A stretch of 64,000 nt of DNA from Hydrolagus colliei (Eukaryota), in contig CM068756.1 of assembly GCA_035084275.1 (NCBI GenBank), positions 14,756,001 through 14,820,000 on the forward strand, in the 5' to 3' direction. Positions 15,761-47,124 of the stretch are shown here, piece after piece (within the stretch, counting starts at the first letter, position 1; every line of letters begins with the position of its first letter). The position numbers and the translations under genes were made by a program. The notes under the pieces were generated by a model, which did not search any database, was not told where the DNA came from, and saw only the letters and a program-made list of their open reading frames with translations.

Positions 15761-15899
15761 CAAATGTTCCAACCTCACTATATATTGCACTCTTCATGCA
15801 GGTCAGTGTATGGGACACTGCACAGTTGGGGGCTTGGAAGCTGAGGGTGATCATAGCTGCCGCCAAATGGGGAATTGTTAAAGCGGTATTAAAAATAAT

Positions 15900-24180: not shown

Positions 24181-24659
24181 AATCTCAGATACACAAATTG
24201 CACCTTTCACTGTATCTTGGCCTTCGTTGAACCTAACTCATATATGAAAGTACTAGTATGTCCAAAACTGGCAATAATAATAATAGTAATCCGGAGGGAG
24301 GTCGAAAAACAAGGGCATACAAAAGGAAACAATTTTGGGTTTGGAAGTAAAAATAAAGGTTTCTTTCAGCTTTTTAATGTCAGCCTATGACTGGATTTAT
24401 CAGGAGAAAATAGCAAGTTAGTGAACCTCAATCACATCTATATATGTATAGACAGAAACCTTCCTGCATGGCTCCTGTCAGCAACTAAATACATCACAAT
24501 AACAAAATTCTATTTGTAGAGCACCTTTCGCTTTGTAGGACATCCCAAGATGCTGAACAGTCAGGGATCAGGTGGGGTGGGGTGGGTGGTGGGTTGGGGT
24601 GGGGTGGGGATGCAGGGTTTGGATGAGGGAGGTCAGAGAGATGACAGAAAATTAAACAT

Positions 24660-25232: not shown

Positions 25233-25287
25233 ATGTTGGCGTGTCTTGTGTTACACCACCTGTCTCTAACAGGAATATTTACCAAAG
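25233..25287 (+). CDS. Gene C exon 1, leader MLACLVLHHLSLTGIFTK-G
   Basis: ATG + 18 codons, donor G|GTTTGT as in D and E. Confidence 0.8.
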
Positions 25288-26209
25288 GTTTGTGCTTATT
25301 CTATATCCACATTTGCTGAAAATCTATTTATTTTATTATATAAAGTCAGTTTTTCAATTTAACACGTATCTTCTGAGTTAGAAGTTGTATTTCAAGAGCA
25401 CATTGAGGCTTTAACTGACAAAGTCTGGGATTACACTACAAGGCAATGCTTGGATACTGCTGCATTGTTGAAGGTGTAGGCTTTTGTTTTAGACTTTAAA
25501 TCAAGTCCCATTTGGCATGGAAATATTGGGAAAGTATGTCCGATGTTCTTACCAACATAACCCCGGTAAAACTGTTTATTCACTTAATGGCTGTTTGTGG
25601 GACAAATTGGTTGGCTGCCTCGGTCCACAACAAAATACATACTTACCACATTTTAGAGTACTGTACATGCTGCGAAGGGTTGTGATGGGACTTTCCAATG
25701 TTAAATGCACAATATCAAATGAAAGGATTTTTAATTATATCTGGATCTTCTCTAGTATATTTGTCTTCACTATGTTATTACTGTATTTATAATTCATGTT
25801 TGAATTTAATCCTGATAGTTTTCATGGTACTTTTGATGAATCCAATACCTCGAACACCAGGCTTTCATCAGAAGTGCAGAAGTCAAAGTTTATTCCACCT
25901 CTTGCTAACCCCAATTTGTATCTTTGTTCATTATACTATTGTCCCTGAGTCTGATGCTTGGGGGTTCAAACCCCACGTCAGGTCTCGGAACTCATAGAGT
26001 CGAGGCTGATATCTGCCAACTCATTAATCAATTAAATGAACAATAATAACATTTTACAACATGTCCTGTGAAGCTCTTAGAGAGGTCTCTGCAATACTAT
26101 GGACACAAAATCTAATGTAAAGATTATTAATTGTCTCTATCATGCTCTGTCTGTATATTTCTTCATTATGTTTTTGATGCTAATCAATGTTTTAATTTAT
26201 TTCTGATAG

Positions 26210-26530
26210 TAGCTGATGGTGCTTTTATCAAAGTGACCCAGTACCCCGAACACCAGGCTGTAAGCAGAGGTGCTGATGTCAAGTTCTACTGTGCCTTCCC
26301 TCTCCCTGATCACAACTCGTATGTTAGAGTCCACTGGTGGAAGCAAGGCGAGCGTCAATACATACACACGAGACCCAATAACAGGATAAATATTGGTTTT
26401 GACAGTAAATCATGTGGCCTATTGCAACTCCATCATGCCACTGTCCAGGACTCCAGAGTCTATCACTGTACAGTAGTTATTCGGGGGGAAATGGCAAGAA
26501 ATGGAACTGGATCACAGTTAACTGTATACG
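26210..26530 (+). CDS. Gene C exon 2, Ig V-set domain (GTGSQLTV end; DSRVYHC)
   Basis: 321 nt; C, W, C conserved; AG/GTAAGT. Confidence 0.92.
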
Positions 26531-26911
26531 GTAAGTAAGAATACAAGTTGCTTAAAGTGGAAAAATCTCAAAACGTTTCCGTGCATTTATAACGATTTCT
26601 AGTGAATACGTTACAGATACAAACACAGTAGTCATGTGCACAGAACCCATGTAAATGAATAAATATATATTTTGGAGACCGGTTGGACACCCCCGTTCTT
26701 ACCAATAATTTACCGCTACATTTACTTTATTTGTGTCTACTGAAAAGACATACACATTTCCAGTTAACATTTCATCCTAAAACAGCACCTTCAATAATAT
26801 AGTCAAAAATATAAAATAGAAATAAGACACAATTATGGTACATCAAAAACTGAGTAAAGTTTAATCCAGCAACTGAATCCATGTAACTAGACTCTGTTAT
26901 TTCTTCTACAG

Positions 26912-27229
26912 TTCCTCCAGATCCACTGAAGATAGAGCACACAGCTCCTCAAAAAAATACAGCTACATCGCTGACCCTTGTGTGCAAAACAGCTGCATTT
27001 TATCCGGAGAATCTGACCCTCACTTGGCATAAAAATGGGACTGAAATTCCAACTGGGATAATTACCACTAAACAACAGAATACAGATGGACTTTATGAAG
27101 TTTCCAGCTCTTTGGAGGAGATTCAGCCTGTCGTGAGTGGGCTTGTTTATACCTGTCGGGTTTCCCATCTTAATAACCAGACGGCAGAAATTGCCTATAC
27201 TGTTCCTCCTCGAGATACACAAAGAGAAG
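26912..27229 (+). CDS. Gene C exon 3, Ig C1-set domain
   Basis: LVCKTAAFYPENLTLTWHKNG...YTCRVSH; predicted GC donor AG|GCAAGT. Confidence 0.88.
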
Positions 27230-28219
27230 GCAAGTGGATTTGTGCTAACTATTTTTACTGGAATGTTTGCTTCTTTTATTCTGCATTTTAAAATATAGCC
27301 ATACAATTTACATCACATAAATTACCTGTAATAACAATTAATAATCCTAGATTTGATATAAGACTTTCACGTTCGGAAGACATCTCAACAAGCTTCACAG
27401 GTTACACTGAATTGTATGGCAACGTGACAACTAATTTCCACACAGCAATGTTCCATAAATAGCCATGAAGTGAATGACCGAGATAATTTGGGGGATTATT
27501 AACCAGAGCAGCTTCTCTTTTCGAACCATGCCATGGAAAGTCAATTAGTTAACAATTTTACAGAAATATAACATTATAGTAATCGGCACCATAATTGATA
27601 GGCATGATTTACACTCCCCTTAATAATAAATAATACTCTTTATATTTCATTTAAGAGGCGTTCAATACGGGAGAATGCCTCATAGCGCTTCGCATGACAT
27701 AATGTAAAGTGTATTGATTGCATTTTGTGAGAAAACACAACGGACAACAGTATCCCCAAAACAATAATAAATAAATGATAAATTGTATGTGGATGATTCT
27801 TGGCCAGGGGACAGAAGAACCCTCTTCACTTTTAAAATAGTGCAGTACCTATTGTCCAATTGAAAAATATGAGCTTTCATATATTGAAATATATGAGCCT
27901 AAGGATGGTACCTATAGATATAAATTAGTCAAGTTTTATTGGAGAATATATTAACTGCAGGCAATGTAAATCAATATACTGCACTGTAATTTGCCTGTAA
28001 AAATGCTAAAATCTCAGCTTTAAAATAGTTTACTTCTAATGAATGTGAGCAGGAACTGTTGCCAACTTGCACACAGCAACGTTCCATAAATGGCCATATG
28101 AAGTGCACAATCAATTTCATTTAGGACCAGAGCCAAGAGCAGTTTCTCTTTTCCAATAGTGCCATGGTTTCATTAACACCCACTTCAACAGGCAGAGATA
28201 ATCTGGGTTCATAATTGCA

Positions 28220-28515
28220 TAGGGCTGCAGCTCATTGGTGAGAGCACTCGCCTAGCACGTGAAAGACATGGGTTTGATTCCTGGCCGGGCGAAACCTTAG
28301 GCAAGTTTCCCTCCCCCACATCGTAATAATACCGCAAGAAATGAAAACAATAATAATTTAGTCACTCAATCCATAACTTTTTGTGGGACACTGCTGTGCA
28401 CAGTTGGCTGACATGTTTCTCCCACATAATACACAGTCAATCCACTTTACAGTATATTTTGTGAAGCGCTTTGAGAAGTATCAAAGATGTGAAAAGCGAT
28501 ATTTGAAATGCAATG
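28220..28515 (+). mobile_element. tRNA/Deu-type SINE
   Basis: A-box-like GCAGCTCATTGG and B-box-like GTTTGATTCC; L2-like tail. Confidence 0.75.
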
Positions 28516-28918
28516 TTTATGAACAATAAAATCTCATTTGAAACAGACTCAACATTAAATGGAGAATCTTTGAACTGTACAGATTGCAAATTAATGACAC
28601 TTGCCCCTGACACATTTAAATCTCAGCTTTCAAATATTTACTGTGTGATGAATGTGAGAATGGATTCTATATTTGTATCCCATTATAATTTTTGTTATTA
28701 CATTCTAATATTGTGTCCACGATATCTAATTGTTTCCTCCAATAATGATGATTCCTTATAAAATGTTGCACAGAGGGTCGACTGTGCGTCAATGCTGACC
28801 TGTATTTGAACATCATATTTTCCTGCCGGTGCTCAAGCTTGACCAGTTAATGACTGTGTACAGTATTAAACACTATCAGGCAGAGCACACAGCTTCATGT
28901 GGTTGCTTTATTTTGCAG

Positions 28919-29023
28919 GTTCTCACAATGCAATTACAATTATTCGGCTTACCTTTGGAGTATTCATAATCCTACTGCTGGCCATCATCATCGTGGACTA
29001 TATCCGATTTTTTCCACTTTAAA
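28919..29023 (+). CDS. Gene C exon 4, TM with Arg (GSHNAITIIRLTFGVFIILLLAIIIVDYIRFFHFK-G)
   Basis: TTTTGCAG acceptor, donor GTGAGA; homologous to the gene B TM; terminal exon unresolved. Confidence 0.82.
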
Positions 29024-29721
29024 GGTGAGACAGCTATTGACTTTAGTGACTTCAATTTCTTCCATTAAAAAATATTTGCTGAGTCTAGAATAACAGCAGG
29101 AGCTGAAGTGAGAAATATAAATTCCTAGTCGGTAATATATTCCGAGACTTTGTGAAAGGAATTGTGTTGCGATGTTGAAGCATTTCCAATTCTGTGGTAC
29201 AGATCTGCAAATTAAAAAAAAAAATTATTGATAGACAAATAATTGAAAATAATGTAGCAACAGAGTATGTACAGAAATAATTTTAAATTCCAGCTCAAAA
29301 AATCCTCAAGTATCTGTACAGTGGATGACTGCACTAACTGAACAAATTAACTTAAATTACGGTATGATGCGACATTAAGCATCGCATTGAAACTAATATT
29401 ATTCTTTTAGGTTCTGATTTTTAGGTGATGAATTTCAGTTTTTATTTCTAATTTGTGTTTACTGTATTGATCACCTAACACTATGTTCTTAAACGTTTCA
29501 AAAATAGCTTTATCTTTCCAGATCTTCTAATTATATTAGAAGTTCTAAGTGAACTGAAACAGAAAACTAATTGTTGTGGATAGTAAAAATATATATTTTT
29601 AGAAAGACTATTATTTATTTAACTTGATGAAAATTCAGTTAATTAGGAATGTTCATAAGGTGTAAATAAATATGCAAGATCCTGTTGTTTAAAATATGCC
29701 TTACACAAAACAGTAATTTAT

Positions 29722-30710
29722 ATGCTGTTTGTAATCTACATCAATGATCTGGACTTGGGTGTACGGAGTACAGTTTCCAAGTTTGCAGATGACACTAAGT
29801 TAGGGAGAATAGTAAATAGTGAGGAGGATAGTAGCCATCTGCAAGAGGATATAGACAAATTGGTAAAGTGGGCAGACACATGGCAGATGAAGTTTAATGC
29901 AGAGAAGTGTGAGGTGATGCATTTTGGGAGAAGAAATGAAGGGAGGCAATATAGGCTAGATAGTAAAATTTTAAATGGTGTGAAGGAACAGAGAGACCTA
30001 GGGATTTGTGTTAGTGACTCTTTGAAGGTGGCAGGACAGGTAGACAAGGCTGTTAAGAAGGCATATGGGATACTAGGCTTTATAAATAGGGGTATAGAGT
30101 ACAAAAGTCAGGAAGTGCTGACTAACCTCTACAAGACTTTGGTGAGGCCTCAGCTGGAATACTGTGTTCAATTCTGGTCACCACATTACAGAAAGGATGT
30201 GAAGACATTGGAAAGGGTACAAAGAAGATTTACTAGGATGGTGCCAAGATTGAGGGACTTCAGCTATGAGGAGAGGCTAGATAGGCTAGGGTTATTCTCT
30301 CTGGAGCAGAGAAGATTGAGGGGAGACCTAATAGAGGTTTATAAAATCATGAGGGGTTTGACAGGGCAAATAGAGAAAAACTATTTCCACTCGTGGGCGA
30401 ATCTGTGACTCGTGGTCACAGATTTAAAGTAGTTTCAAGGCGAAGTAGAGGCGAGCTGAGGAGAATTTTTTTCACTCAGCGAGTTGTTCGAATCTGGAAT
30501 GCATTGCCTGAAAAGGTGGTGGAGGCTGATTCAATAACAACTTTTAAAAGGGAATTAGATCTTTATTTAGGGAGAACAGGTCTATTAGGCTATGGGGAGC
30601 GGGCAGGGCAGTGGGATTGAATTGCTCTTTTCAAAGAGCCGGCACAGACTAGATGGGCCGAATGGCCTCCTTTTGTGCCGTAAAATTCTATGAATCTATG
30701 AATCTATGAA
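29722..30710 (+). mobile_element. CR1-clade LINE, 5'-truncated (RT C-terminus + 3' UTR)
   Basis: LFVIYINDLD...KFADDTKLG...LVRPQLEYCVQFWSP; one frameshift near 30360; (TCTATGAA)n tail. Confidence 0.95.
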
Positions 30711-32389
30711 TATATTACAGTATATAGGAATTAATGAAGTCAATAATGGGAATAATTATTTAGCAATAATCAGAAATGTTTCCCTTATCATAAGAAGCAA
30801 TGACAAATCACTGTGTGCAAGAAAACAGAACCAATGGAGAATGCACATTACATGTTCCAGTCAGCAGGGAAATAAATAGAATGTATTGAACATAGAGAGA
30901 AATTCACTACTCTTGAATTTACTGATACATTACCAAACTACCAAACAATGCAAGCAGTTATTGTTGAAAACAGCAATGTTACACAGTGTTATAACTACAA
31001 ACATGGTTTTATGAAATGTGAAACGTTTCAATTTTTAATAGATTTCTTTAAATCACTAAATAGTCTGTGTCCTTTCCATTTTGTGGAAGTTCTGTGTTAT
31101 ACTAGTAGTCAATGCAAATATGTCTACAAGCTAGAGACTAATATCAAATATTATACATAAATATTATATACTATATATTATACATATAATCATGTGTCCT
31201 ATTCATTTTCATCAATGAAATTCAATAAAATATTATTGAATTTAAAGTATCCATTAATGCACCTGCAGAGTTTCTCCACTTTACAGCATGTCTTGTGAGG
31301 ACATCCTTTTGGCGTGGCATGAAACTAAATAATAATCCTTGCATTTGATGTAGTGAAAAAAATAATAAATTGGTTAATTCAATCAACGATTGTTTGTTAC
31401 ACACTGTTGTGTGCCATTTGCTGCTGTGTTTCACCCAAAAATATAGTGTCAATTCACTTTTCAGTATATTTGGTGAAGCGCTTTGAGACATCCAGAAGAT
31501 GTGAAAAGTTATATATTCAATGCAAGGATTATTATTGTTATTACAGTATTATCACGTACTTGAGACATCCCAAAGTGCTTCACAAAATATACAGTACTGT
31601 GAAGCGTAGTGACTGTGTATTTTGCAGGGATGTCAAGAACCGTATTAGGATGATGATGAATATTCAATGACTGATTCAATGACAACTTTGCTTTCATGTA
31701 AGGAGTGTACCAAATGCCTTACTTAAAAATGATCACATAATCCAGTGTTTCTGATTTCAATTGAACAGTGCTGTGCATGGAAAATGGTTAAAGTTTTAGT
31801 GCTAGGTGTGTTTATTTCATCATTTCACTGTTATCCATGCTGCTCAATACTATAATTATTAACCTGCCTTTCCCTGGTTTCCTTTACAGTTCATTGGCAT
31901 CGTGAAGGTGATAGTCCATGAGAAGAGCTGGTAGAAATCTTGCTTCTGAGACAGGGGAAGTTTCAAACCATACATTAAGATTTCAAATTCCCTTCATTGT
32001 TGAGGCACTTTTGTGGCTGTTGCGGGTGCTGTTCTCTGGATGACATCAAAAACCAATGTTCTGTGTGTCTGTTTAGTTGGACCATAAAGATCCCAAGGGA
32101 CTTTTCAAAAAGTGAAGGAAGTTTCTCTTGGAGTCCTGGCATCCAGTTAAATTTGTTTATTCACTTGATGTTATTATTATGTTTATTTGTTGGACGTTGC
32201 TGTGCACAAATTGAATGCTGTCTTGTCTAATAAAATCCACCATCAGCACACATTATAGTAAATCCTACTAAGTGTACTGAGAGTCATACCAACATGGAAG
32301 ACGCTGTATGAAATGCAGGAATTTTTTGAAGCATAATCCATGATTTTCAGCAGGTAAATCTTATTGTGAGGCTGGACAACAAGATCTCG

Positions 32390-32530
32390 AAAGAAAGCAC
32401 AAAGTACTGCAGATGCTGAAAATCTGAAACAACAACAGAAGTCACTGGGAACACTCAGCAGGGCAGGCAGCATCTATGGAGAAAGGAAAGTTAGTCAATA
32501 TTTCAGGTCCACGACCCTTCATCAGAACTC
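32390..32530. repeat. Short interspersed repeat fragment, second copy at 57231-57372
   Basis: Shared CAGATGCTG..AATCTGAAAC...CTCAGCAGG..CAGCATC.ATGGAG; family not assigned. Confidence 0.6.
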
Positions 32531-33179
32531 AAAGATTCAGTTTTCATCGGATTATTTTGAAAAGAAGAACTCAATATTTTAAATTCCCCAGCACATTTTT
32601 TGTGATGTAGTTACATATAATTACTGTGTATAGAATTTTGAAATACAAAACAGGGCATTGAACCCAACTTGTTGTTACCAGGCTCTACATGAGCCTCAAA
32701 CCCTTCTTAAAAAAAGCTTATTCATTATCTCTTTATGTGTGTTTACTGAAAATACAAATCATCAACTGTAAATTCAGGTGAGGAAACCCCTATTTTTTCT
32801 TTAGATTTTCTGTAAATGTTTCCATTTCGTACATTTCAATGAGTAGATGAAACGTTCCCAGCTGATGCAGAGAGAAATAAGTTTGAATAGTAAAGTTCCA
32901 TTAAGATACAATAGATTGAAATTACCACCCGCCTACACATTGCTAGAAATGCAAATGTAGAATGCTCCAAATTGATATCAAACATACCACGATCATATTA
33001 GCCTATTATATTTTAGCACAATTATCACAGGAGAGTGAAGATTTCAACTATTCCTACAAAATGTGACCTTGAAGGTAATTGTTTTATTTTTTTAAATGGA
33101 AATACCAAAGTGAAGGACCAATATTCACTAAACAGACAACTTGGTTGAAAATAATTATTGTTTAAAATAATTGTATATT

Positions 33180-33490
33180 TAATAATAATAATAATCCTTT
33201 CATTTGATATAGCGTTTTTTACATCTTCTAGACATCTCAAAGCGTTTCACAGAATATACCTTACAGTGAATTGACTGTTTATTTGTGGGCAAAACATGGC
33301 AGCCAATTGCACACAGCAGTGTCCCACATATAGTAGTGGATTGAAACGAGCAATTTTTTTTTGTCTTGATGGATTATTATCAGGCGTGTGGATTCAGGAA
33401 ACTTGCCCAAGGTTACACCTTGCCTGGAATCAAACCCTGGTTTCCTGCTTGTAAGGCGAGAGCTCTAACTACTGAGCTACAGGACTCCAC
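33180..33490 (-). mobile_element. tRNA/Deu-type SINE, near full length
   Basis: Reverse complement of 44953-45275 including the tRNA head. Confidence 0.85.
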
Positions 33491-34035
33491 TGTAATATAT
33501 TGTAATATAAATATTTTATATTCTACCTTAGACCTGTAATTATACTGCTGAATGACTGTTGTATAGGAAGCTTGTATACTACTGCTTTGTGTTCCCTATT
33601 CCGAACAAAGCTTAGAAATAAAATTTTGTAAATGTGTTATTTGTTCTATTCCATTTATTTCAGTTGTTCCCAAATAATGCACTTTTGTGAAAGGTAATGT
33701 CATTCAAAATAGCTGGTCTCTCAATTGTGAAGGGTGCTTGGTTAAATAATTAGGCGAGCGTGCTCTGAATGAATTTCGTACAATTACCTCATTGAGTCTT
33801 TCACGGTATATTCACCCTAATATGTAGCATTAGTGCACTATGACATCAGACACAAATCAAGTATGTTTTTTCTGAACTACATTTGGAAGAATAAGCTATA
33901 AATTTAAAAATTGGATTCTGTAATTTATGGCTGATATAGGGAGTTGATGCTATTTCAGTCTTTATGTCATACTGGATTTGAACATTTGTGTTACAGAACA
34001 AAGATGTAATGATGAAGAGAAGACAGTGGAATCCA

Positions 34036-34257
34036 GCTAAAACATAGATATAAATGATTTTATACGACATTAATTCAAGCCATATTAAATAGATTTAACA
34101 TTGAGTTAATAACTATGAGTTTATTTGTGCATTGCTGCTGTTAATGGCTAAAACATAGATATAAATGATTTTATACGACATTAATTCAAGCCATATTAAA
34201 TAGATTTAACATTGAGTTAATAACTATGAGCTTATTTGTGCATTGCTGCTGTTAATG
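34036..34257. repeat. 111-bp tandem duplication (2 copies, 1 mismatch)
   Basis: 34036-34146 and 34147-34257 compared by eye. Confidence 0.9.
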
Positions 34258-37200
34258 ATAACCTTAATACAGTAATACTGATCATCATAGAATCTTACAG
34301 CACAAAAGGCCCAACGTGTCAGTGCTGGCTCTTTGAAAAGAGCAATCCAAAGTCAATCCCACTCCCCGGCTCTCTCCCCATAACCCTGTGCTCCCCAAAT
34401 AACCATTCACGTCTCTTTTAAATGTTGTTATCGAATCGGCCTTCACCACCTTTCAGGCACTAAAATAACAATCCTAACAAACAAACAGAAATACAAGCCA
34501 ATGTTATTTGAGAGTGATTGGTCAGGATACCACAGAAACTCAGGAACTTGGAACTCATCGTCTCTGCTAATCATCTGACTCCATATTGCCAAGTGAGCCA
34601 AGCTGACACCCAAGGCCAGATTATGGGGCAGAGGGGGGAAGTTAGATCACATTCAGGAGCCCTTTGAACTATGCATGCAAAATATGTAACAATATCTAAT
34701 TTAGATACTTTCTTGCATGACTTCATAGTTGCAAACATGTCAACTGCAAGATCAACGATATTGTGGGCACAATAGACACGATTGCTTGTCCATTCACTCT
34801 ATCTGGGATCACTGGTTAATTGAGCGATTTTTGGATGAGACTTATCTTTGCGAACAAGTGTTCACCTTCACAGAGCCGGTACTGGTAATATTTAGAATAT
34901 ATGAAATGTAATTGCTATTTGGGAAATATTGATTCCACCAAGTAATTGTATTTAATATACCTCAGCATTTCTCGCTGAATTTTGTCACTTGGATTATGTG
35001 AAATCCAGAACGAGCGCAAATTGATCGACACTGTCTTTATTAAAATATATTTATAGCGTTTCTAAGATAAACTCTATCGCTGCAGAATATGACATCTATT
35101 CTCTACTGTTATGTTGATGGACCTTCTGGAGATATGACTATATGACTAAATGTCTCTAGCTCTGCCTCATTGGGTGTCACTCACGGTTAGCCTCTCACCA
35201 GGTTGTATGAGGCACAAGGCAGCTGGGGCCACTCTCATACTCGGGACGCCCCTTATACCCCAAGGCCCCCCCCCACAGACGGTGCTCCCCTCCCGTCCTC
35301 AGACCCAGGGGCTCCTCTCAGACGCAGACTCCCTTCAGAACCTGGGACCCAGCCACCCCCCCATCAGACCTCGAGTATATAAACCATGGTTTACCTGTTG
35401 ATTGGTTAATCCAGTCTTTTTGATACATTTAATCTTTTGTTTCTTTCAATATTCTATCCTACTTTCATACCTGAACTGAAACAAAGTAGAACTGACCTCT
35501 CCACCGGGTGTCAGACTTCATGGCTTCATCAAGTTTGACTTGTGAGCCTTGATTACCACAAAGTATATAACTCTAAGCATACATATTCACACAACTGCTG
35601 GGCAGTCATCCTGCCACAAACCAGCTATCAGACCTAGAACTGCATTATAGACTGAGCAGGCCTTTGATAATGTAAGTGGAGTGTGAGATTCCAATGGGTA
35701 TTTTATGATGAAGTGTGAACTAACTAGTTTTCCGATCTTTGGTGTTACAGACAAACGTAGGAATCCTGTAACTCGGCAGATACACTGTCCTGGACTTCTC
35801 AGACTCCAATAAAACTACAAGGGGCTCAAAATCTGAATATACTGAGATACAGTTGAGGGAGTATAAGAGAGGGATATCTACAATGAAGCAAGAATAAGAA
35901 ATGCCCAATAAATGACTCAGAGCTATTTGTATATTATTTGTAATACTGGTCAGACTCTGGGTATATATCAAGGATTATTATTATTAAACAGTAAAACCTT
36001 AATAATCCAGCACGGTTGGGGCACTCAATGCCCAGATTTCGGAGATTGCCTATATTTAGAACCTACCCTAGAAATGGCTGGGGAAGCCCCATGGGTGCTG
36101 TAAACAAAGCACTGACATGGAAAAAATGCACGAGTGGCAATCACAGCACCAGATAACAGAGTGACGAAAGCGTGAACTGCAAGCAGCTGTTCTGAATTTG
36201 AGGGTATTTGCTGACTTCGGAAGAAGATGAATGCTGTATGTATTTTCAAATCTTACGGATTTAGCAAGTTGCCGGCTTTTGGAATGTTGGATTATCGAGG
36301 TTTTACTGTATTGTTACTCATGCAACTGTAGTTTATTGAATCATAAAATATCACAACACAAAACAGACATGTTGGTGAATTATATCTGCAATAGTGCTTT
36401 ACCCTGCATGAACCAACAATCTCATAATCTGTTCACTCCCCTGAACATTCCTCCTTTTCAAGAGAATTCCACATTCCCGTCGACTGCGTAAATGTTCTAA
36501 ACGCTGCTTTGCCTTTTATCTTAAATTGGTGTCCTATCGCCACTGACAGGTCAACAAGTGCAATGCGTATTAATGTTTACTCCTATTTTAGTTTTCATTC
36601 AATAAAATAAAACTTATAATATGAAGCACTATTCCAAGTGGAACCCATGTCACAAGATTGATGCTCTCTTCCTTGTCTCTGGTCAGCTCATTCTCACTTT
36701 AGCAATGATGGCATCAACCGTGCAGAAAAACAACAACTTGCATTTATGTAATGGTCCCTGTGTGGGATACTATCCAAGATTGCTTGACATTGGCAGAGCA
36801 CAACACAGAGCTACCAATAGGGAATAGAGGGCATGAGGACATGCAGAAGGCCAGAACCACTCAAGTGGAGACAGTGGGTTGTAGTTCGGGGGGTAAGCAG
36901 GTCGGTGATGTAGGAAGGTGCCATGGCATGAAGGGATTTGAAAATGAGTATGACGATCTTGAAGTCGATCTGTTCAGCAACAAGGAACCATTGAAGCTTG
37001 GCTAGGACTAATGTGAGACATGCCTTTTGTAGAGCAGGTCCAGAACCTTGTTATCTTGTTTGATGCTCGACTCTCATTCAAACCTCACATAGGTGTTCTC
37101 ATTCTCTCAGCTTTCCCTTACCTCTGCAATAATGTATGCCTCTCAACTCCATTAGCATTCTTGCCCTCCCCTGGATGCTTATCTATGAGTTTCAATAAAC

Positions 37201-38799
37201 TTCGTGGCAATAAACTCTGAGACTCTGCTTGCCAGACTCCTCAATCTTGCCTGCAAAGTTGCAGTTGAATCAGAACTCTGCCTTTACACAACCAGGCTCG
37301 CCAAGCCTATCACATAGAGATGACATGCCCACAGAGTGAGAATAGAGTCAAAAGCTTGCCAAGCCTCTTGTGGGGGTTGGAATCGGCTACAAGATATGAT
37401 TGTAGATGGTCTTCCGCTCTTTTGCTTTCCACATTTTTGAATCTCACTGACAAAGGTTCTCGCTCTCAGAGACGGTTTAAGACTTCAAATTACTCGGTCA
37501 ATTTTCTTAGGGGATGCGTCACTGATGGTAAGTTTCATAAGTACGCATACGCAATTTTATTTTACGCAACAATTAACTTTCGGCGGGTGCAATGCCTCTA
37601 TAGGCAGACTGTGGAGAGCTCTGGTGTTCGCTATACAGATACATTATTTAACAAAAGACAAGAGCACAGCACACTCAAATTCTCCCATTTTGATGATTTT
37701 TGCATTACTTTTGTGGCTCACAATATGAGGGGCCTGTTGGTGCATTGCAGCAATTGCACCGACGTTAGAAAACCCCTCTGTTCCCTCTTCTAGACGAATG
37801 GGTCCTCTGTTTCTGTCACTGAGGAGGTTCTAATTCTCTGGTCACCATATAGCATCAACCTTACCTTTGCTGGGCCAGCATCCATGACCCACGCACTTCT
37901 GTCATTCACGGTTGGATGGTAGAATGAACTCAATTGAAAACTTACCTAATTCAATAAGTTATTTTTATTCCAATTTGTATGTAGCGAAATATCTTTTCTT
38001 ATAGTGATTCTGCTTCTTTTTTGGGGGTTGATATAGCAATGATCCTTTGCTGTCTATTCACAGTAAGCACACTTTACAGTATATTCTGATAAACACTTTG
38101 AGACATCTCGAAGACATGATAAGGCACTTTATCAAATGTAAGAAAGCCCTTCATTCTCTGCCTGCTCCCTGCCTCTCAGACCTCCTCACCCAGCATGTTC
38201 GCTTGACTGTCATTGATCTGCTGCTCATCACACACTCCGCCTAACAATCAGAAGTCATGCTTCCAGCCACTGTGCCGTGAATTTCTGGAAAACACTCACT
38301 CAATCCTTCCCCATTGCACTCCCTCTCCCTTTTTTCAAGTCCCGCCTGAAAATCTTCCTCTTCCACCATGCTTATGCACCCCTGTATCTGAAACCATGCC
38401 ACACACCCCAACTGGAAAGGCCTCTGACAACCCCCTGTGTGGAGACCCTACATAGATGCAACATTGTTGTAGTTGTCATTATCATACGTCTCGGTTTCTC
38501 TGTTCCATCATTAGTGGCGATGACTTCAGCAACTATAACAGAACCTCTGGAGCTACCTGCTCAATCTCTCTGCCGTGTTCCATCTTTGCACATTTTCAGA
38601 TTGCACCTGAAGAGTTTTCCACTATTCCTACAGTGACCTTGATATCATAAAAATGTTTATTTTGTGTCAACGTTTGACAGATATGTGTGTATCATTGGAT
38701 ACATGCAGTCTAAAGCTGAACTAATGATCTACAAGCAGCGAGTGTGACCTAGCCCTACCCAATCCAGGGGGCACTGACCACAGGTGACCGTTTTAATTT

Positions 38800-40330
38800 T
38801 CAGATCTATTCACAATAGAGTTGGGTGTCATCCGCACACATGTGACCATGTTTGTGGGTAATGTCACCAACAGGAATCATTAGATATTGAAAAGTAGGGG
38901 GCCAAGTAGAGTGCTGGAGGATGCCGCAGGTGACAGTGCCGGGCCTGGAGGAGAAGCCATTGCTTGGTGACAAAATGGATTCCATGCGACAGGTAAGAGT
39001 CGAACCAGGCAAGGGCAGGTCTATGAGGAACGAGGAGAGGTGGCGTAGGAGGATGGAGTGGTTGACAGTGTTGAAAGCAGCAGAGCTGTCAAGGAAGATA
39101 AGGAGGCAGAGAGATCCCTGATCACAGAGGTTTAAAATGCCATTGAAGACTTTGACCAGGGCTGTGTCCGTGTTATAGGCAACATGGACGCCAGATTGGA
39201 GGGATTTAATGAGTAATGGTGAGAAAGGAAGGAGCGAACCTGGGACCCAACAACTCATTTAGAGCCTTGGAGAGAAATGGGAGGTTGGAGATGGGCTGAG
39301 AGCAGAAGAATAGGGATGGGTCCAACAAAGGTTTTTTCAGGATCAGGTGGTTGACGGCTGTTTCTGGATGGGTGGGAATAGCACTAGTTGATAAGGAGAG
39401 GTTGATGATGTAGGTTACGAGGGGGAACTAGATGGTGGAGCTGGGAGATGTGGTGAGAGCTGGGGATGGGTTTGAGGGAACAGGTGGTGAGTTTCATTTT
39501 CAGGATGGCAGTAGAGAGGGTGAAGGGAGAGATTGGGTCAAAGCTGTATAGTGGTGGGTGGGGGTCGATCCTGATGGATCGGTAATGGGAGGATAGTGGT
39601 AGATGAGGTATAGCAACAACAACATCAAAATTAGATTTATTGCATGACTTTCAGGTCGGAAGGATGTCCCAAAGCGTTGAACAATCAGGTCGGAGAGTAG
39701 GAGAGGTGGAAGAGTTAGGATGGGAGCAGAAGGCACGGTCGACGAGGAAGGTCTTGAGACCGGCCTTGAAGGAGGAAAGAGAGGAAGTGAGGCAAAGGGT
39801 TTACGGGATGGAGTTCCACAGTGTGGGATCAGAGAGGCTGGAAGTCCAGCCACCGATGGTGGGGTGGTTAAGGCGGAGGACGCAGAGCAGGCCAGAGCCT
39901 GCTGAGTGGAGAGGAAGGGCGGGCTGATAGGAAGATAGCAGGTCGGAGAGATAGGCGGGGTCAAGGCCGTAAATGGCCTTGAAGGTGAGGGTGAGGATCT
40001 TCAAATTGATCCTCTGGTGGATGGGGAGCCAGTGGAGATGGGCGAGGGTGGGAGTGATGTGGTCACGGAGCCTGGTATGGGAAAGAACACGAGCTGCAGA
40101 GTTCTGAATGATCTACAGCCTATGAAAGGAGGAGCTAGGAAGGCTGACGAAGAGAGAGTTCCAGTAGTCGAGCCTTGAAGTGATAAAGGCGTGGGTGAGA
40201 GTTTCAGCGGCATGGGGGGTGAGGTAGTGGTGGAGTTTGGCAAAAATATTGCAAAGGTGGTGGAAGGCTGGTGGCTGAATGGATCCCCTCGATTTTAGAT
40301 TTGAGGATCCAGGATCTCCTCACAGTTGGA
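38800..40330 (-). mobile_element. Older L2 fragments (RT region and 3' end)
   Basis: LIFLDSSAAFNTVNHSILL, MCADDTQLY, PTIGGWTSSLSDPTLWNSIP. Confidence 0.8.
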
Positions 40331-40789
40331 ATTGGAGGAAAGGATGGGTGATACATGGGAAGATGGCTAGAGGAAATGATTAGTGTTGGAGAAGAGGAGA
40401 CTGGGGTTATCCTTCAACTCCAAGATTCACTTGCAGTAGAAGGAACACTTGGCAGGGGCAAGGGTGGAGCGGTAGGTCTATCCAGCGAGATCTACTGACG
40501 AAATGGTTAAATCCTTTAAATAAATGTAGTCTTATATCCACCTCATATTATTGGTCTAATAAGAGGATGTTTTCTATAGGGTTCAGATGGAGGGAACACT
40601 TTGGAGAAATTTTCCATTAACTATAATTAGTTGTGATTTAAAGAAATTATCCCACACAGTAAGAGACGCATTCATCGTTCAGTAAATTCATGGGAATCTT
40701 GACAGTTACGTTCAGATATAGTTTATTCTTCATCTTTGCTACTGATAAAACATATAATTCCAGTCACCCTTTAATCATAGAATTATACA

Positions 40790-41340
40790 ACAATAAAATA
40801 TTGCAGCATAGCAGTCAGCCCATCGTGCTTGTTCCAAAAGTTTCGCAATCAGTTCCACTCTCCCACACTTTCACCATATCTTTGCAATTTCAACTACCTA
40901 TCTGTTAAAAGTTGTTATTGAATATGCTTCCACCAACCTTTCATGAAGTGTTTAAGGACTGTCTCTGTGTAAAAAGAACTATCCTAATCTCCCTTCTGCT
41001 TCTTTTGCCAATTATCTTAAATCTATGATCCTAAGTTACCGAACCACAGCTAAGGGAAACGCTTAATCCCTACCTACTTTATCAAAATCCCTTATAATTT
41101 TGAGCACCTCTTGTCAATCACCTCTTAATCTTCTGTGCTTTTAGGAGAAGAATCCCATTTTCTCTAGTCTCTCCACATAACTGAAGTCCCATGGTACCAT
41201 CCGCTCAACACCCACTCCAAGGACTGGATATCCTTCCTGAATTGTGGTGCCTAGAATTAGGCAAAGTACTCAAGCTGAGGCCTAACCAATGACTTGCAAA
41301 GGTTTAGCAGAACTTTGTCACCTTTGCATTCTATGCCTCT
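40790..41340 (-). mobile_element. Old CR1 fragment directly upstream of the gene D promoter
   Basis: Homologous to CR1-type 3' sequence; orthologous piece at 53270-53580 upstream of gene E. Confidence 0.6.
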
Positions 41341-41359
41341 ATTTGTAAAGCCAGGCAAC

Positions 41360-41450
41360 TTATTTTGCAAATGTCACCCAATCCAGCAAACCAATCTTGT
41401 GAGCTGATGCATACAGGAAATCAAACGTCACTGCCACTTATCTCATTCAA
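41360..41450 (+). promoter_or_regulatory. Gene D putative promoter (TTGCAAAT, CCAAT, CAGGAAAT, AACGTCA, TTATCT)
   Basis: Motif block conserved with 53595-53690 upstream of gene E. Confidence 0.45.
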
Positions 41451-41513
41451 GCAACTGCAACCCCATTTTTACAGACTAGCAAGAGCTTCAGTTAGTCTTA
41501 ACAGAAAATCAGA

Positions 41514-41568
41514 ATGTTGACGCTTTTCATATTTCACCGTCTAACTTTAATAGGAATAATTTCCAAAG
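41514..41568 (+). CDS. Gene D exon 1, leader MLTLFIFHRLTLIGIISK-G
   Basis: ATG + 18 codons + G|GTTTGT. Confidence 0.8.
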
Positions 41569-41899
41569 GTTTGTGGTTGCGCAATTCAATTTGCTGATAA
41601 ATAACAAAGATGATGTCTGTTTGAAAAGCGAAAGGGGTTTCTTGCAGTGTGATTGCCAACAATCCAGCAATCCGTGGTTTTTTGGGGGACATTGCTGTAC
41701 GCAATTTCGCTGGCTCATCTGCCAACTAAATGTATAGTTAAACATTTTTGCAGTATACTCTGCAAAGCACTTGGAAAGGTGTTTGCAATATTCAAAATGC
41801 TATATCAAGGATGATTAATTGTGTCTGTATCATGCTCTGTCCATATATTTCTTCATTGAGTTTTCGGTTCTAATCTTTGTTTTACTTTATTTCTGATAG

Positions 41900-42220
41900 T
41901 AGCTGATGGTGCTTTTACCAAAGTGACCCAGTACCCCGAACACAAGGCTGTAAGCAGAGGTGCTGATGTCAAGTTCTACTGTGCCTTCCCTCTCCCTGAT
42001 CACAACTCATATGTTAGAGTCCACTGGTGGAAGCAAGGCGAGCGTCAATACATACACACGAGACCCAATAACAGGATAAATATTGGTTTTGACAGTAAAT
42101 CATGTGGCCTATTGCAACTCCATCATGCCACTGTCCAGGACTCCGGAGTCTATCACTGTACAGTAGTTATTCGGGGGGAAATGGCAAGAAATGGAACTGG
42201 ATCACAGTTAACTGTATACG
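41900..42220 (+). CDS. Gene D exon 2, Ig V-set domain (DSGVYHC, GTGSQLTV)
   Basis: 321 nt; 4 nt different from gene C V exon. Confidence 0.92.
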
Positions 42221-42611
42221 GTAAGTGAGAATACAAGTTGCTTATAGTGCAAAAATCTCAAAACTCTTCAGCGTGTTTATAATGACTTGTAGTGAATATT
42301 TTATGGATACAAACTTGGTAGTCATGTGCACAGAACCAGCCATTAAGTAAATAAATGTATATCTTGGAGGCTATTAGGACACCAGTACACACTCCCTTTT
42401 CTTTACAGTAATCTCTCTACATTTACTATATTTGTGTCTACTGAAAAGACATACACATTTCCAGTTAACATTTCATCCCAAAACAGCACCTTCAATAATA
42501 TAGTCAAAAATATAAAATAGAAATAAGACACAATTATGGTAACATGAAAAACTGAGTAAAGTTTAATCCAGCAACTGAATCCATGTAAATAGACTGTTAT
42601 TTCTTCTACAG

Positions 42612-42929
42612 TTCCTCCAGATCCACTGAAGATAGAGCACACAGCTCCTCAAAAAAATACAGCTACATCGCTGACCCTTGTGTGCAAAACAGCTGCATTT
42701 TATCCGGAGAATCTGACCCTCACTTGGCATAAAAATGGGACTGAAATTCCAACCGGGATAATTACCACTAAACAACAGAATACAGATGGACTTTATGAAG
42801 TTTCCAGCTCTTTGGAGGAGATACAGCCTGTCGTGAGTGGGCTTGTTTATACCTGTCGGGTTTCCCATCTTAATAACCAGACAGCAGAAATTGCCTATAC
42901 TGTTCCTCCTCGAGATACACAAAGTGAAG
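42612..42929 (+). CDS. Gene D exon 3, Ig C1-set domain
   Basis: 318 nt; predicted GC donor AG|GCAAGT. Confidence 0.88.
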
Positions 42930-44021
42930 GCAAGTGGATTTGTGTTAACTATTTTTACTGGAATGTTTGCTTCTTTTATTCTGCATTTTAAAATATAGCT
43001 ATACAATTTACATCACATAAATTACCTGTAATAACAATTAATAATCCTAGATTTGATATAAGACTTTCACGTTCGGAAGACATCTCAACAAGCTTCACAG
43101 GTTACACTGAATTGTATGGCAACGTGACAACTAATTTCCACTCACCAATGTTCCATAAATAGTCATGAAGTGAACGACCAAGATAATTTGGGGGATTATT
43201 AACCAGAGCACCAGAGCAGCTTCTCTTTTCGAATCAAGCCATAGAAAGTCAATTAGTCAACAGTTTTAAAGGAATATAATGTTTGCTTCATTTCAACTCC
43301 CCATAATAATAAATAATAATACTTATATTTGATATACATGGGTTTCAAGTTGGGAAGATATCTCACAGCACAACACATGACATACTGTAAAGTGTAATGA
43401 TTGTATTTCGTAAGTAAATGCAGCGGAGAACAATGTCCCACAAACAACAATAAATAAATGACAAATTATAGATGGGGGGTTCTTGGTCAAATTACAAGAG
43501 AATTATCGTCTATTTTAAAATTGTGTCACCGTAGCTAACATCCACTTGGAAAATATGAGCTCGAATTAACATCCATCCAAAGGACGGTACCTATAAATAT
43601 TAAATATTAAATTTTTAATAACGAATATGTTAACTGCAGAGAATGTAAAACAATATAATTCAACTTCTAATGAATGTGAGCAGGTTTTGTTTATTTCCAT
43701 CACACACTATTTTCATGAGTTAATATTATGCATCATGTATACTTTCTCTGAATACATTAAATATAGTTATTTGAAAATTTCCATCAAAATACCTGCTCCA
43801 AAGATGATTGCAATTGTGTTTAGTTTGGATCTGAGTGTTTCCCCTGAAACCAGAGCTGAGTTCGGGAACTGAGCCTGTGGGCTACATACGGTGGCAGGTT
43901 TCATGTTACATGCACGGTTTATGGAATACTAACAATACAATTATCTGGGTATTTGTTCATCCCTCTCCCTTACACCTTAGTAACAATAATGAATAATTCT
44001 CATGTTTCATCTTTTTTATAG

Positions 44022-44111
44022 GGAGCGCATTGACAACTTCACAGATTGCTGGTTTTGTTGTAGGTGGACTTGCACTTTTGGTGTTTATTATAATCATTGG
44101 GCAAATGAAAG
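44022..44111 (+). CDS. Gene D exon 4, uncharged TM (QIAGFVVGGLALLVFIIIIG-QMK)
   Basis: AG/GTAAGA, phase 1; paralog at 56622-56711. Confidence 0.85.
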
Positions 44112-44284
44112 GTAAGAGTTTGTTTCTTTTTGTTCCAGTTAGTTGTAAAAGCTAAATTGTAATCAATTTCTGGGTGAGAGTCAACTTTCTACAGTTTTCT
44201 ACCGAAGCCCTACTGATTGGTCCACTCTAGCACCTCCGCAACTCAGTCACTGGCAGCAACAGCATCTATAGATGCACATTTTTG

Positions 44285-44430
44285 AAAAATAGAGGGATTA
44301 GGGGATATGGGGATAGGGCAGGTAATCAAAGTTAGGAGAAGATCAGCCATGATCTTGTTGAATGGCGGAGCAGGCTCGAAAGGCCGAATGGCCTACTACT
44401 GCTCCTAATTCTTATGTTCTTATGTTCTTA
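44285..44430 (+). mobile_element. CR1 3' end fragment
   Basis: GGCCGAATGGCCTACT... + (TTATGTTC)n tail. Confidence 0.7.
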
Positions 44431-44858
44431 TTTCACGTCACCAATCCAGTCAGGAACCTGGGCAACTTGTTTCATCCTGAACTGTGCTTTCTCCCCCTAA
44501 ATTTGTGCTATGACCTGCACTGCCTTCCACCACCTCCACAACATTGTCCATCTCTGTCACTGCCTCAATCCTCAGGCAGCTGAAACCAACTTGTTTCACC
44601 ATGAGGCGTGATATTTTTAAACCATTCTTGCAATATGTAAATTTAAATATCAGATCTTTTTTTAAATCGAGAAGGTCAGGCAAAGCACCAAGACTCATAC
44701 CTCGTTAATAGGAGCAACAGAAAGGGAGCCAGATAGATTGGGTTGGTTTCAAATGTTTATACATTTAAATATGAAAGGTGTTGCGTTACTTCTACCAAAA
44801 CAAATTTAGAAATAGGAGAATAGTAAATAATTTAGTCAATAAGGTTTTTTCTTTTTAG

Positions 44859-44902
44859 GGTTACACAGGAAGCATAATTTATCGGACCATCGTGGCAAGC
44901 AG
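44859..44902 (+). CDS. Gene D exon 5, 44-nt cytoplasmic exon (GLHRKHNLSDHRGKQ)
   Basis: AG/GTAATT; paralogs in A and E. Confidence 0.82.
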
Positions 44903-44952
44903 GTAATTAAAAGAGTTATCCAGTTTGCTGCTTCATGTCTGAAATGTGGTTA

Positions 44953-45275
44953 GTGGAGCTCCTGTAGCTCAGTGGTTAGAGCACTCGCCTTACAAGTGTG
45001 AGATCTGTGTTCGAATCCAGGCAGGTCAAGGTGAAACCTTTTGCAAGTTTCCTTACTCCACACACCTAAAAATAATCCGTCCAAAAATCACACAATAATA
45101 AAATTGGTCATTTCAATCCATGACTGTTTGTGGGACACTGCTGTGCACAATTGGCTGCTGCGTTTTGCCCACAAATATACAGTCAATTCACTTTAAAGTA
45201 CTGTATATTCTGTCAAGCGCTTTGAGACGTCGATAAGATGTGAAAAGCGCTATAATCAAATGCAAGGATTATTAT
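44953..45275 (+). mobile_element. tRNA-headed Deu-type SINE, full length
   Basis: A-box TAGCTCAGTGG, B-box GTTCGAATCC, core CTGCTGTGCACAATTGGCTGC, L2-like tail GCGCTTTGAGACG...GTGAAAAGCGCTATA + (TTA)n. Confidence 0.88.
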
Positions 45276-45560
45276 AATTTTTAGTAGCAAAATTTAACTT
45301 TACAATATCTCTTTTGAAGCACTTTGGGACATCTAAACCACATGATAAAGTGGGGGTTATCATTATATTTTAATGTATTTCTTACAAGTCAGTATGGTTT
45401 CACTGGGCAATTCAAACTGGGTTCACACTGACACAAGGTAAAACTGCAAGGGACCAACCATATGCATATAATATCACAGCTAAAGACAACTCGAAGGTTT
45501 CTAGAGAAAGATTCCTAAATAATTGCATGACAATTAAATGTTGCATATTGCGATTTACAG

Positions 45561-45737
45561 GGGGTGCAGGTATCAGAGGCTGAGACGGTGGCTTATGCCA
45601 CATTGGATTTGAAAATTTTTAAGAAACGTTCAAGACCCAAGCATCAAGAGGAGAGAACAGTGTATGCACAGGTAGAGCTGAAAATCACAAACTCCAGTTA
45701 TAAATCAGTTATCCAATGTCAATTATTACCAAAGTAA
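45561..45737 (+). CDS. Gene D cassette exon 'a' with ITIM VAYATL and ITSM TVYAQV (read-through stop)
   Basis: TTACAG acceptor, phase 0; internal donor CAG|GTAGAG at 45671/45672; stop TAA 45735-45737. Confidence 0.85.
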   Translation, partial: GVQVSEAETVAYATLDLKIFKKRSRPKHQEERTVYAQVELKITNSSYKSVIQCQLLPK

Positions 45738-45769
45738 ATAGTTTAAATTGCTTTAGTTGATACAACAAC

Positions 45770-46190
45770 AAACTTACACTTGTATTGCACCGTTCACATC
45801 AGGAAGATGTCCCAGGGCACTGGACAGTCATTGTTTCAGACCCGAGCTGGGATTGCGGATGGGGAGAGTAGAGGAAAAAGCGGGGATTTGGGATGATCGT
45901 CGAAGTGAAGGGTTTTGAGGAGGAACTTGAAGAAGGCCAGGAAGAGGCAGAGCGACAGCAGGATGGAATTCCAAAGTTTGGAGACAGAGTGGCTGAAAGC
46001 TCTCTCACTAAAAAGAGAGAGTTGTGGGGCGGGTGGGTCGGGGGACATGGAGCAGGCCGGAGTCTGCTGAGCAGAGGGTGTGACCGGGGTTAGTAGGGGT
46101 TTAGGGGATCGCAGATGTAGGGTGGGGCAAGGCCATGGCGGGCTTTGAATGTGAGGACCCAAACCTTGAATTGGATTCTCTGGGTGATGT
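45770..46190 (-). mobile_element. Old L2 3' fragment
   Basis: ERAFSHSVSKLWNSI; L2-type tail. Confidence 0.7.
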
Positions 46191-46907: not shown

Positions 46908-47124
46908 ACCAAGCAAGGTCTGTAAAGTCAATTGTACCCCAAACAAGCTGACGTACGCTACTCTGGAGTTTTCGGGATCCAAGAAAACAGGAAAATGTAA
47001 ACGTATTGAGAAGGATACCCAGTATGCTGAAATACAGTTGAGAAACTACAGAGAGGTAGGGGCGATATCACCAGACACATACAGTCACAATAATCAAAGT
47101 CACTTGTTAGTGTGGCCTTCATGG
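46908..47124 (+). pseudogene. Gene D cassette exon 'b' (LTYATL / TQYAEI), disrupted at its 5' end
   Basis: Near-identical to 59146-59352 but reads TKQGL* from the acceptor because 7 nt are replaced by 17 nt. Confidence 0.75.

Follow-up and report, generated by a model that had tools for sequence, protein, structure and literature searches.

Probable gene conversion between the V and C1 exons of an activating-type and an ITIM-bearing receptor gene in the chimaera Hydrolagus colliei

Genes C and D

The DNA considered here is a 64-kb stretch from the chimaera Hydrolagus colliei (GenBank assembly GCA_035084275.1, contig CM068756.1, positions 14,756,001 to 14,820,000 of the forward strand), below called the window, with positions counted from its first letter. 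It contains no undetermined bases (N = 0), has a G+C content of about 39%, is rich in copies of short and long interspersed elements (SINEs and LINEs), and holds a tandem, one-strand cluster of immunoglobulin-superfamily receptor genes of V-C1 type, designated A to E. In each, a leader exon is followed by a V-set exon whose end is J-like (…GTGSQLTVY), by a single C1-set exon and then by 3′ exons. Attention is centred on C and D, which have the same orientation with 15.7 kb between them, and whose V and C1 exons were probably matched by recent gene conversion. Their features are as follows.

25233-25287, plus strand: gene C leader exon, MLACLVLHHLSLTGIFTK, with phase-1 donor AAAG/GTTTGT
26210-26530, plus strand: gene C V exon
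26912-27229, plus strand: gene C C1 exon (GC intron start at 27230-27231)
28919-29022, plus strand: gene C transmembrane and tail exon, (G)SHNAITIIRLTFGVFIILLLAIIIVDYIRFFPL and stop, with a good acceptor, phase 1, in frame with C1
41514-41568, plus strand: gene D leader exon, MLTLFIFHRLTLIGIISK
41900-42220, plus strand: gene D V exon
42612-42929, plus strand: gene D C1 exon, GC donor (intron start at 42930-42931)
44022-44111, plus strand: gene D transmembrane exon with uncharged segment IAGFVVGGLALLVFIIIIG, 80% identical to the transmembrane exon of gene E at 56622-56711
44859-44902, plus strand: gene D short cytoplasmic exon
45561-45737, plus strand: gene D cytoplasmic exon with an immunoreceptor tyrosine-based inhibition motif (ITIM), VAYATL, and a motif like an ITIM or an immunoreceptor tyrosine-based switch motif, TVYAQV; 73% amino acid identity to E 58518-58673
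46942-47040, plus strand: candidate exon downstream of D with a second ITIM-like pair, LTYATL and TQYAEI; 95% amino acid identity to E 59164-59283

The exons of gene C match the Pfam V-set (E=5.7e-9) and C1-set (E=6.8e-14) families, and its leader is homologous to those of D and E. Its 3′ exon, located by a hydropathy scan together with tblastn, ends ...IIRLTFGVFIILLLAIIIVDYIRFFPL and stop, with an arginine in the transmembrane segment and 8 cytoplasmic residues that hold no motif; joining C1 to it by a predicted splice gives a model of 265 amino acids. Homologous exons lie after gene B (17218-17333) and in a pseudogene, X (53025-53137). Similarity at the DNA level revealed no D-like transmembrane exon downstream of C, nor was any ITIM-like exon found in the window after C or after B. 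Activating receptors pair with adaptors bearing immunoreceptor tyrosine-based activation motifs (ITAMs) via a basic transmembrane residue, and by analogy the transmembrane arginine and short tail point to gene C as an activating-type receptor. Gene D, whose simplest model has 334 amino acids, would be of inhibitory type, to judge from its uncharged transmembrane segment and its ITIM motifs; motifs of the LTYATL/TQYAEI type are also present in the tails of homologs such as P0004 and P0008. A preliminary description of this DNA had likewise taken C as activating and D as inhibitory, and the transmembrane arginine with short tail of the one, set against the uncharged segment and VAYATL/TVYAQV of the other, bears it out.

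The reading frames of both genes are intact and their splice sites fit the consensus, every junction being in phase 1 up to the transmembrane exon. The donor that follows the C1 exon is GC (GAAG/GCAAGT) in C, D and E, the intron of E starting at about 55358, whereas A and B use GT. Pertinent to this donor is a gene model from another chimaera, Callorhinchus milii, designated P0001, which reads past the end of its C1 exon (…SKGKWIRVNYSYWNVSFFYSAS) much as read-through into the window intron would (GKWICVNYFYWNVCFFYSAF and stop); a missed GC donor is suspected of having truncated that model.

The identity mosaic and its origin

On self-BLAST of the window C and D share one unbroken homologous segment, 26029-27978 versus 41723-43657, with a third copy in gene E. 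Divergence along it, given as Kimura two-parameter distance (K2P), is far from even.

26029-26195 (C), plus strand: 5′ flank, 73% identical to D, K2P 0.35
26196-26574 (C) and 41886-42264 (D), plus strand: tract 1, 7/379 bp differing, K2P 0.019
26575-26727 (C, 153 bp) and 42265-42428 (D), plus strand: unconverted block of the V-C1 intron, 75% identical, K2P 0.30
26728-27441 (C) and 42429-43141 (D), plus strand: tract 2, 10 substitutions and 2 indels in 714 bp, K2P 0.014
27442-27571 (C) and 43142-43279 (D), plus strand: shoulder, about 91% identical (12/130 and an 8-bp indel), K2P 0.10
27572-27978 (C), plus strand: 3′ flank, of old paralogous sequence within gene C intron 3, 74% identical to D, K2P 0.32 (0.315)

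From tract 1 onwards the identities thus run 98.5%, 75%, 98.6%, 91% and 74%, with homology extending as far as 27978 in C and 43657 in D. Tract 1 consists of the V exon with 14 bp upstream and 44 bp downstream of it; tract 2 spans the C1 exon together with 184 bp of the intron before it and 212 bp of the one after. Within them the V exons align without gaps and differ at 4 of 321 nucleotides (26228, 26254, 26319 and 26455 in C coordinates), and the C1 exons, also gap-free, at 4 of 318 (27054, 27123, 27183 and 27225), precisely the counts that the preliminary description had made by eye. Other parts of that description need qualification. The diverged piece of the V-C1 intron, which it had placed at about 26540-26720 versus 42230-42420, is real with the limits given above, the first 44 bp of the intron being within the V tract. 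The leaders are diverged as claimed, matching at 39/55 nucleotides and 8/18 residues, but are still homologous; intron 1, also described as diverged, is 73% identical where it can be aligned, which is over its last ~170 bp only. The transmembrane exons are certainly unlike, though as different, non-homologous exons rather than diverged copies, and tracts centred on exons apply to V but not to tract 2 with its two intron portions.

The boundaries are well supported statistically. In a Sawyer-type run test over polymorphic sites there are two runs of 32 concordant C-D sites, where the maximum in 10,000 shuffles was 23 (P<1e-4). By Fisher tests the intron block (37/151 aligned bases differing, plus 15 gap columns) departs from the tracts (P=1.7e-23) but is indistinguishable from the flanks (P=0.75). 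The two tracts are alike in divergence (P=0.61), which is compatible with one patchy event as well as with two. The shoulder stands apart from both its neighbours, tract 2 (P=1.9e-5) and the 3′ flank (P=5.8e-5). The shoulder, at 9% divergence, is probably the remnant of an older, longer tract.

That the exons are the most similar parts is what a simple recent duplication of the ectodomain, or long-term purifying selection, would also give without any conversion. Identity is, however, strongly heterogeneous along a single continuous homologous segment, and the mosaic contradicts the uniform identity expected of simple duplication, which is excluded by the homologous sequence, ~30% diverged, that both flanks and separates the tracts. 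Purifying selection is excluded as the cause since silent sites and introns are homogenised just as replacement sites are: the 8/639 differences in tract exons are indistinguishable from the 9/452 in tract introns (P=0.33), the intron parts of tract 2 (394 bp) are 97.8-99.1% identical, and synonymous divergence (dS) between C and D is 0.015 for V and 0.040 for C1, while that of the V exons to E is 0.34-0.36 (D-E 0.36). An origin of this kind, free of conversion, can for practical purposes be set aside. A single unequal crossover was also considered and ruled out, as it would give one breakpoint in identity where there are at least four. Within the intron block D and E have in common an 11-bp stretch absent from C and 21 substitution states against C, and 13 substitution states are common to C and E; with D-E identity at only 74%, the block is old unconverted sequence and not an import from a third gene.

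The combination makes it quite likely, as judged from the sequence, that recent interlocus gene conversion matched the V and C1 exons of the activating-type gene C with those of the ITIM-bearing gene D. The recency that the preliminary description had proposed for such conversion fits the K2P of 0.014-0.019 in the tracts against 0.30-0.35 in block and flanks, as well as the low dS; tract divergence is ~5% of that between the paralogues themselves. C and D would have started as old paralogues, with ~30% neutral divergence from the leader to 750 bp past C1 and with unrelated 3′ ends. During repair of a double-strand break, one of the two genes would have received D-type or C-type sequence from the other by non-reciprocal transfer, in two tracts or in a single heteroduplex of ~1.25 kb subject to patchy (discontinuous) mismatch repair. 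The V and C1 exons would thereby have been overwritten and 153 bp of the intervening intron left as before, the outcome being one ectodomain shared by an activating-type receptor and an inhibitory one. An attempt to distinguish donor from recipient by distances to E was contradictory and was abandoned: the distances of the two intron parts of the tracts to E, 0.23 and 0.40, do not agree consistently with either the D-E or the C-E flank distances.

Paralogous clusters such as that containing C and D are prone to errors of assembly or polishing, in which reads of one paralogue build or correct the other and an artificial mosaic results. Several features make this very improbable here. The tracts retain 17 substitutions and 2 indels, evenly spread, and have graded boundaries with a 9% shoulder; a 153-bp unconverted island within a 1.4-kb region would be hard to produce with long reads, and the window is free of gaps. 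Moreover, in the independent C. milii genome a gene of activating type is likewise near-identical to one whose leader is D/E-like.

At the protein level the ectodomains are identical at 208/212 residues (8/639 exon nucleotides differing), the four differences being residue 6 in the N-terminal segment, residue 15 in the A′ strand, residue 82 where the F strand starts and residue 211 in the stalk. The BC, C′C″ and FG loops, which are like complementarity-determining regions, are the same in both, and presumably C and D, as far as sequence can tell, see the same ligand and signal in opposite directions. A confident AlphaFold model of the D ectodomain (predicted local distance difference test score, pLDDT, 87.3) has an antibody-light-chain-like V-C1 fold, and its Foldseek matches are antibody light chains, a generic fold that does not discriminate between families. 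Residue 82 (window position 26455) is Arg in gene C and Gly in 32/33 family members, D, E, A and B among them, within a D-S-G-V-Y-x-C motif; on this alignment G82R is a derived, non-conservative change in the activating-type copy. A separate feature of the V domain is a cysteine at residue 68 (…SKSCGLL…), additional to the canonical pair, which C, D, E and C. milii P0001 have and which is absent from A, B and the other 31 family-alignment sequences. It might be unpaired.

Whether selection, rather than mechanism, keeps the tracts on exons is a further matter. Conversion may have been real but neutral, the exons serving as the best pre-existing islands of homology for heteroduplex formation, with no selection for ligand matching or for a decoy. 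Consistent with this, tract 2 reaches well into both introns and random placement would cover the C1 exon in 32% of cases; C1 has also been homogenised between D and E, both inhibitory, where the logic of pairing does not apply; and the changes since conversion have no excess of replacements over silent ones (3N:1S in V and 1N:3S in C1). On the other side, the V tract keeps within 14 and 44 bp of its exon, for which random placement gives about 4% (3.8%), the V exon before conversion was barely better conserved than its surroundings (D-E identity 81% for the V exon versus ~74% for intron), and activating/inhibitory matching recurs in genes A and B and in the Callorhinchus pair. The neutral alternative is, on balance, unlikely, though of all those considered it carries the most weight. 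The fit of the V tract to its exon is mild, post-hoc support for selection on exon matching, and we infer that selection rather than mechanism keeps the tracts on exons. A link to pathogen mimicry, with one receptor acting as decoy, would be by analogy with the CEACAM, Siglec and KIR systems.

Several points weigh against conversion as read here, or against the sense given to it. The flanks of C, D and E are nearly star-like, so that the polarity of transfer gets no support, and tract 2 is longer than its exon by a factor of 2.2. Centring on exons may be partly mechanical, exons being the best-conserved homology. The basis is assembled sequence, with the splice from C1 to the transmembrane exon of gene C via a GC donor being predicted and expression presumed. 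G82R could reflect relaxed constraint on the activating copy C. Finally, P0001 is put forward as the inhibitory partner in C. milii from a protein-level comparison with old models.

Relatives, neighbouring genes and repeats

The nearest database protein is the product of C. milii LOC103185940 (P0001), at 77% identity, and the remaining relatives are from sharks, rays and C. milii. Protein searches gave no match above 83% identity to any window exon, C. milii included. The automatic names of the relatives are inconsistent (SIRP-beta-1-like, PTPNS1-like, tapasin-related, CD276, NCR3LG1-like and Ig lambda-like). A motif of the C-type transmembrane exon, R-x16-[D/E]-H, in which the transmembrane arginine is followed 17 positions on by an acidic residue and then His, is present in predicted proteins of 7 other genera (Scyliorhinus, Heterodontus, Chiloscyllium, Carcharodon, Heptranchias, Mustelus and Callorhinchus). 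Its persistence on both sides of the elasmobranch-holocephalan split is an argument for a functional exon, and as far as seen here the module is specific to the receptor family of C and D.

The comparison with C. milii was made at the protein level and with old gene models. P0180 (LOC103185942) is a fused gene model that ends in a V-C1 unit (unit 2) with ASYDVMAIPRLAFGVFIILLLAVVIVDHFRFFHL after it; counted from its arginine, the tail of this unit matches gene C at 19/25 residues, against 13/25 for the in-window paralogue B. The P0001 leader is of D/E type, matching E at 16/18 residues, D at 13/18 and C at 11/18. Yet the ectodomains of P0001 and P0180 unit 2 differ from one another at 2/212 residues and each is ~25% different from those of window C and D. 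In a maximum-likelihood tree of ectodomains the grouping is ((winC,winD)100/99,winE)97/95 against (P0001,P0180u2)98/95, and (winA,winB)100/99 against (P0180u1,P0183). Tails and leaders thus group by gene type and ectodomains by genome, which is the signature of concerted evolution. The preliminary description had proposed that sister species be compared, and at this level, the protein, ectodomains cluster by genome as its suggestion of conversion would have it.

By locus numbering P0001 adjoins LOC103185939. A separate observation concerns the C. milii DNA directly upstream of that gene (MU249845.1:15803286-15810085, designated L001), in which positions 1-6800, free of gene calls in the current annotation, contain the exons of a D/E-like gene for the transmembrane segment, the cytoplasmic part and the ITIMs. 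They are collinear with, and 71-82% identical to, the 3′ halves of D and E. These exons are probably the 3′ half of LOC103185940, the old model of which ends after C1. The locus begins ~200 bp before the D/E-like transmembrane exon, with the wanted V and C1 exons just outside, and the ectodomain exons of P0001 and P0180 were in none of the nine C. milii loci available (from one 18-Mb scaffold, 15.21-15.83 Mb).

The rest of the window cluster comprises the following.

4109-4429, plus strand: gene A (inhibitory type), V exon
5795-6106, plus strand: gene A, C1 exon
about 6480-6587, plus strand: gene A, uncharged transmembrane segment
8822-8938, plus strand: gene A, ITIM exon
11247-11357: C1-like exon remnant with a stop, between genes A and B
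~12779-13099, plus strand: gene B (activating type), V exon
~14705-15016, plus strand: gene B, C1 exon
17218-17333, plus strand: gene B, arginine-bearing transmembrane exon
24187-24486: V-like exon remnant with stops, just upstream of the gene C leader
51438-51707: pseudogene X, between D and E, C1 remnant with in-frame stops
53025-53137: pseudogene X, activating-type transmembrane exon
53751-59283, plus strand: gene E (inhibitory type), the third copy, used as comparator
53751-53805, plus strand: gene E, leader
~54364-54675, plus strand: gene E, V exon
55042-55356, plus strand: gene E, C1 exon
56622-56711, plus strand: gene E, transmembrane exon
58518-58673 and 59164-59283, plus strand: gene E, ITIM exons

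In pseudogene X the arginine of the transmembrane exon is replaced (…AISQFPSS…), and no V exon for it was found in the window. Genes from outside the family do not flank the cluster within the window. Inhibitory-type genes (A, D and E) interleave with activating-type ones (B, C and pseudogene X), and the decayed exon remnants are signs of birth-and-death turnover in the cluster. A tandem duplication with a unit of about 12.2 kb takes in D and E (41067-50664 versus 53287-63160), and identity between its copies climbs from ~76% over the 5′ half to 85-90% further 3′ (46606-47889 versus 58844-60121).

Similarity confined to C1 exons is not peculiar to C and D. The C1 exons of the ITIM gene A (5795-6106) and the arginine-transmembrane gene B (14705-15016) are 95.5% identical, with dS 0.037, while identity is 74% over the final 300 bp of the intron before C1 and 84% for the V exons, and homology breaks off abruptly behind the C1 exon. 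On sequence grounds this looks like an older tract coinciding with the exon, in a second activating/inhibitory pair. The C1 exon of E (55042-55356) is 95-96% identical to those of C (26914-27228) and D (42614-42928), at dS 0.08-0.13, with flanking introns 70-80% identical and V-exon dS 0.34-0.36. For D and E in particular, C1 dS is 0.083 versus 0.36 for V, with K2P of 0.23-0.41 in the adjacent introns, and the C1 exons seem to have been homogenised among C, D and E. Taken together, the A/B and D/E data indicate that the cluster has commonly undergone conversion over C1 exons, outside activating/inhibitory pairs as well as within them.

Repeats account for much else in the window.

270-1153 (plus strand), 2768-3651 (minus strand), 18620-19763 and 39699-40273: G+C-rich repeat of ~0.9-1.1 kb, four copies, twice as an inverted pair
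2322-2639, 9733-10045, 15458-15774, 17866-18065, 28211-28520 and 31354-31543: tRNA-derived SINE, first copies
33153-33491, 44952-45299, 57734-57905, 60128-60341 and 61191-61479: tRNA-derived SINE, further copies
29722-30405: LINE fragment between C and D, with a 228-residue open reading frame that has a reverse-transcriptase domain (RVT_1 at the Pfam threshold)

The G+C-rich repeat is probably the 3′ part of a LINE. One copy (18799-19767, minus strand) has an open reading frame of 322 amino acids with a reverse-transcriptase-like YADD motif, and copies are also present in the C. milii loci, at 74-79% identity. The SINE has at least 11 copies in the window, 72-85% alike, three of which reach the Rfam tRNA threshold; C. 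milii copies of the same family are 93-96% alike among themselves and at most about 86% like those of the window.

Paired receptors elsewhere and the meaning of the C/D pair

Merohomogenization has been described for paired opposing leukocyte receptors of the KLRC/NKG2, KLRI, KLRB, Ly49 and PIR families, where homogenization after speciation mainly affects the part encoding the ligand-binding domain and leaves the signalling parts different (Fossum et al. 2011, PMC3210942). C and D resemble such pairs in having activating and inhibitory partners in one cluster with homogenised ligand-binding exons, but the families concerned are mammalian and C-type lectin or Ig-like (C2/I-set), whereas that of C and D is chondrichthyan and V-C1. 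Exon-restricted gene conversion is known for the paired CEACAM receptors of Xenopus (PMC5112662), with mammalian CEACAM1/CEACAM3 being comparable (PMC2832619). The V tract of C and D behaves as conversion of this exon-restricted sort; the second tract, unlike the frog case, spans the C1 exon and intron. In addition, the Xenopus partners are in opposite orientation and the activating one has ITAM or ITAM-like motifs, whereas C and D are in tandem and the charged transmembrane segment of C is accompanied by a tail without motifs. The extracellular exons of the inhibitory/activating pairs Siglec-11/16 and Siglec-5/14 are near-identical through repeated gene conversion, and these pairs have been read as a defence against pathogens engaging the inhibitory member (PMC5701461, PMC4042635). 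They are, however, primate sialic-acid lectins with a known class of ligand and with bacterial interactions, and C and D are known from sequence alone.

In domain order and signalling type the nearest parallel is with SIRP-alpha and SIRP-beta, which likewise have a VJ-like V domain followed by C1-set sequence, with an inhibitory member that has paired tyrosines of ITIM type and an activating member that has a basic transmembrane residue and a very short tail. Automatic NCBI names of shark homologues include ‘SIRP beta-1-like’ and ‘tyrosine-protein phosphatase non-receptor type substrate 1-like’. SIRPs, though, are V-C1-C1, and window genes A to E have one C1 exon between V and the transmembrane exon. 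Against the PDB, phmmer placed UrIg2 (8.8e-20) and an antibody heavy chain (3e-18) ahead of SIRP-alpha (6e-17) and SIRP-gamma (2e-15), which were themselves among the best matches. Assignment to the SIRPs was rejected in view of the single C1 domain and a sequence no closer to SIRPs than to UrIg2 or antibody chains.

Searches of the open literature gave no account of such homogenisation in cartilaginous fish or in this V-C1 family, and nothing specific on the family itself in these fish. C and D are a further example of a known phenomenon, documented for mammalian natural killer and myeloid receptors and for frog CEACAMs, and involve no new mechanism. The example is a compact and well-delimited one, with its 153-bp unconverted island between two tracts. 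A broader proposal can be offered tentatively, as one about which doubt exceeds conviction: that paired V-C1 receptors of chondrichthyans predate the holocephalan-elasmobranch split, with a dedicated R-x16-[D/E]-H module, and that the partners have been repeatedly re-matched by exon-scale conversion, independently in at least two chimaera genomes and at least two cluster pairs (C/D and A/B). Were this so, an activating counterpart that tracks an inhibitory receptor would already have been present at the base of jawed vertebrates, probably with pressure from ligand or pathogen. Interest attaches to the lineage, to the conserved arginine-bearing transmembrane module, for which an adaptor could be sought, and to the evidence of repeated re-matching. 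If the C/D pair is functional, the mechanism, and the selective logic presumed to underlie it, extend to the earliest-branching jawed vertebrates.

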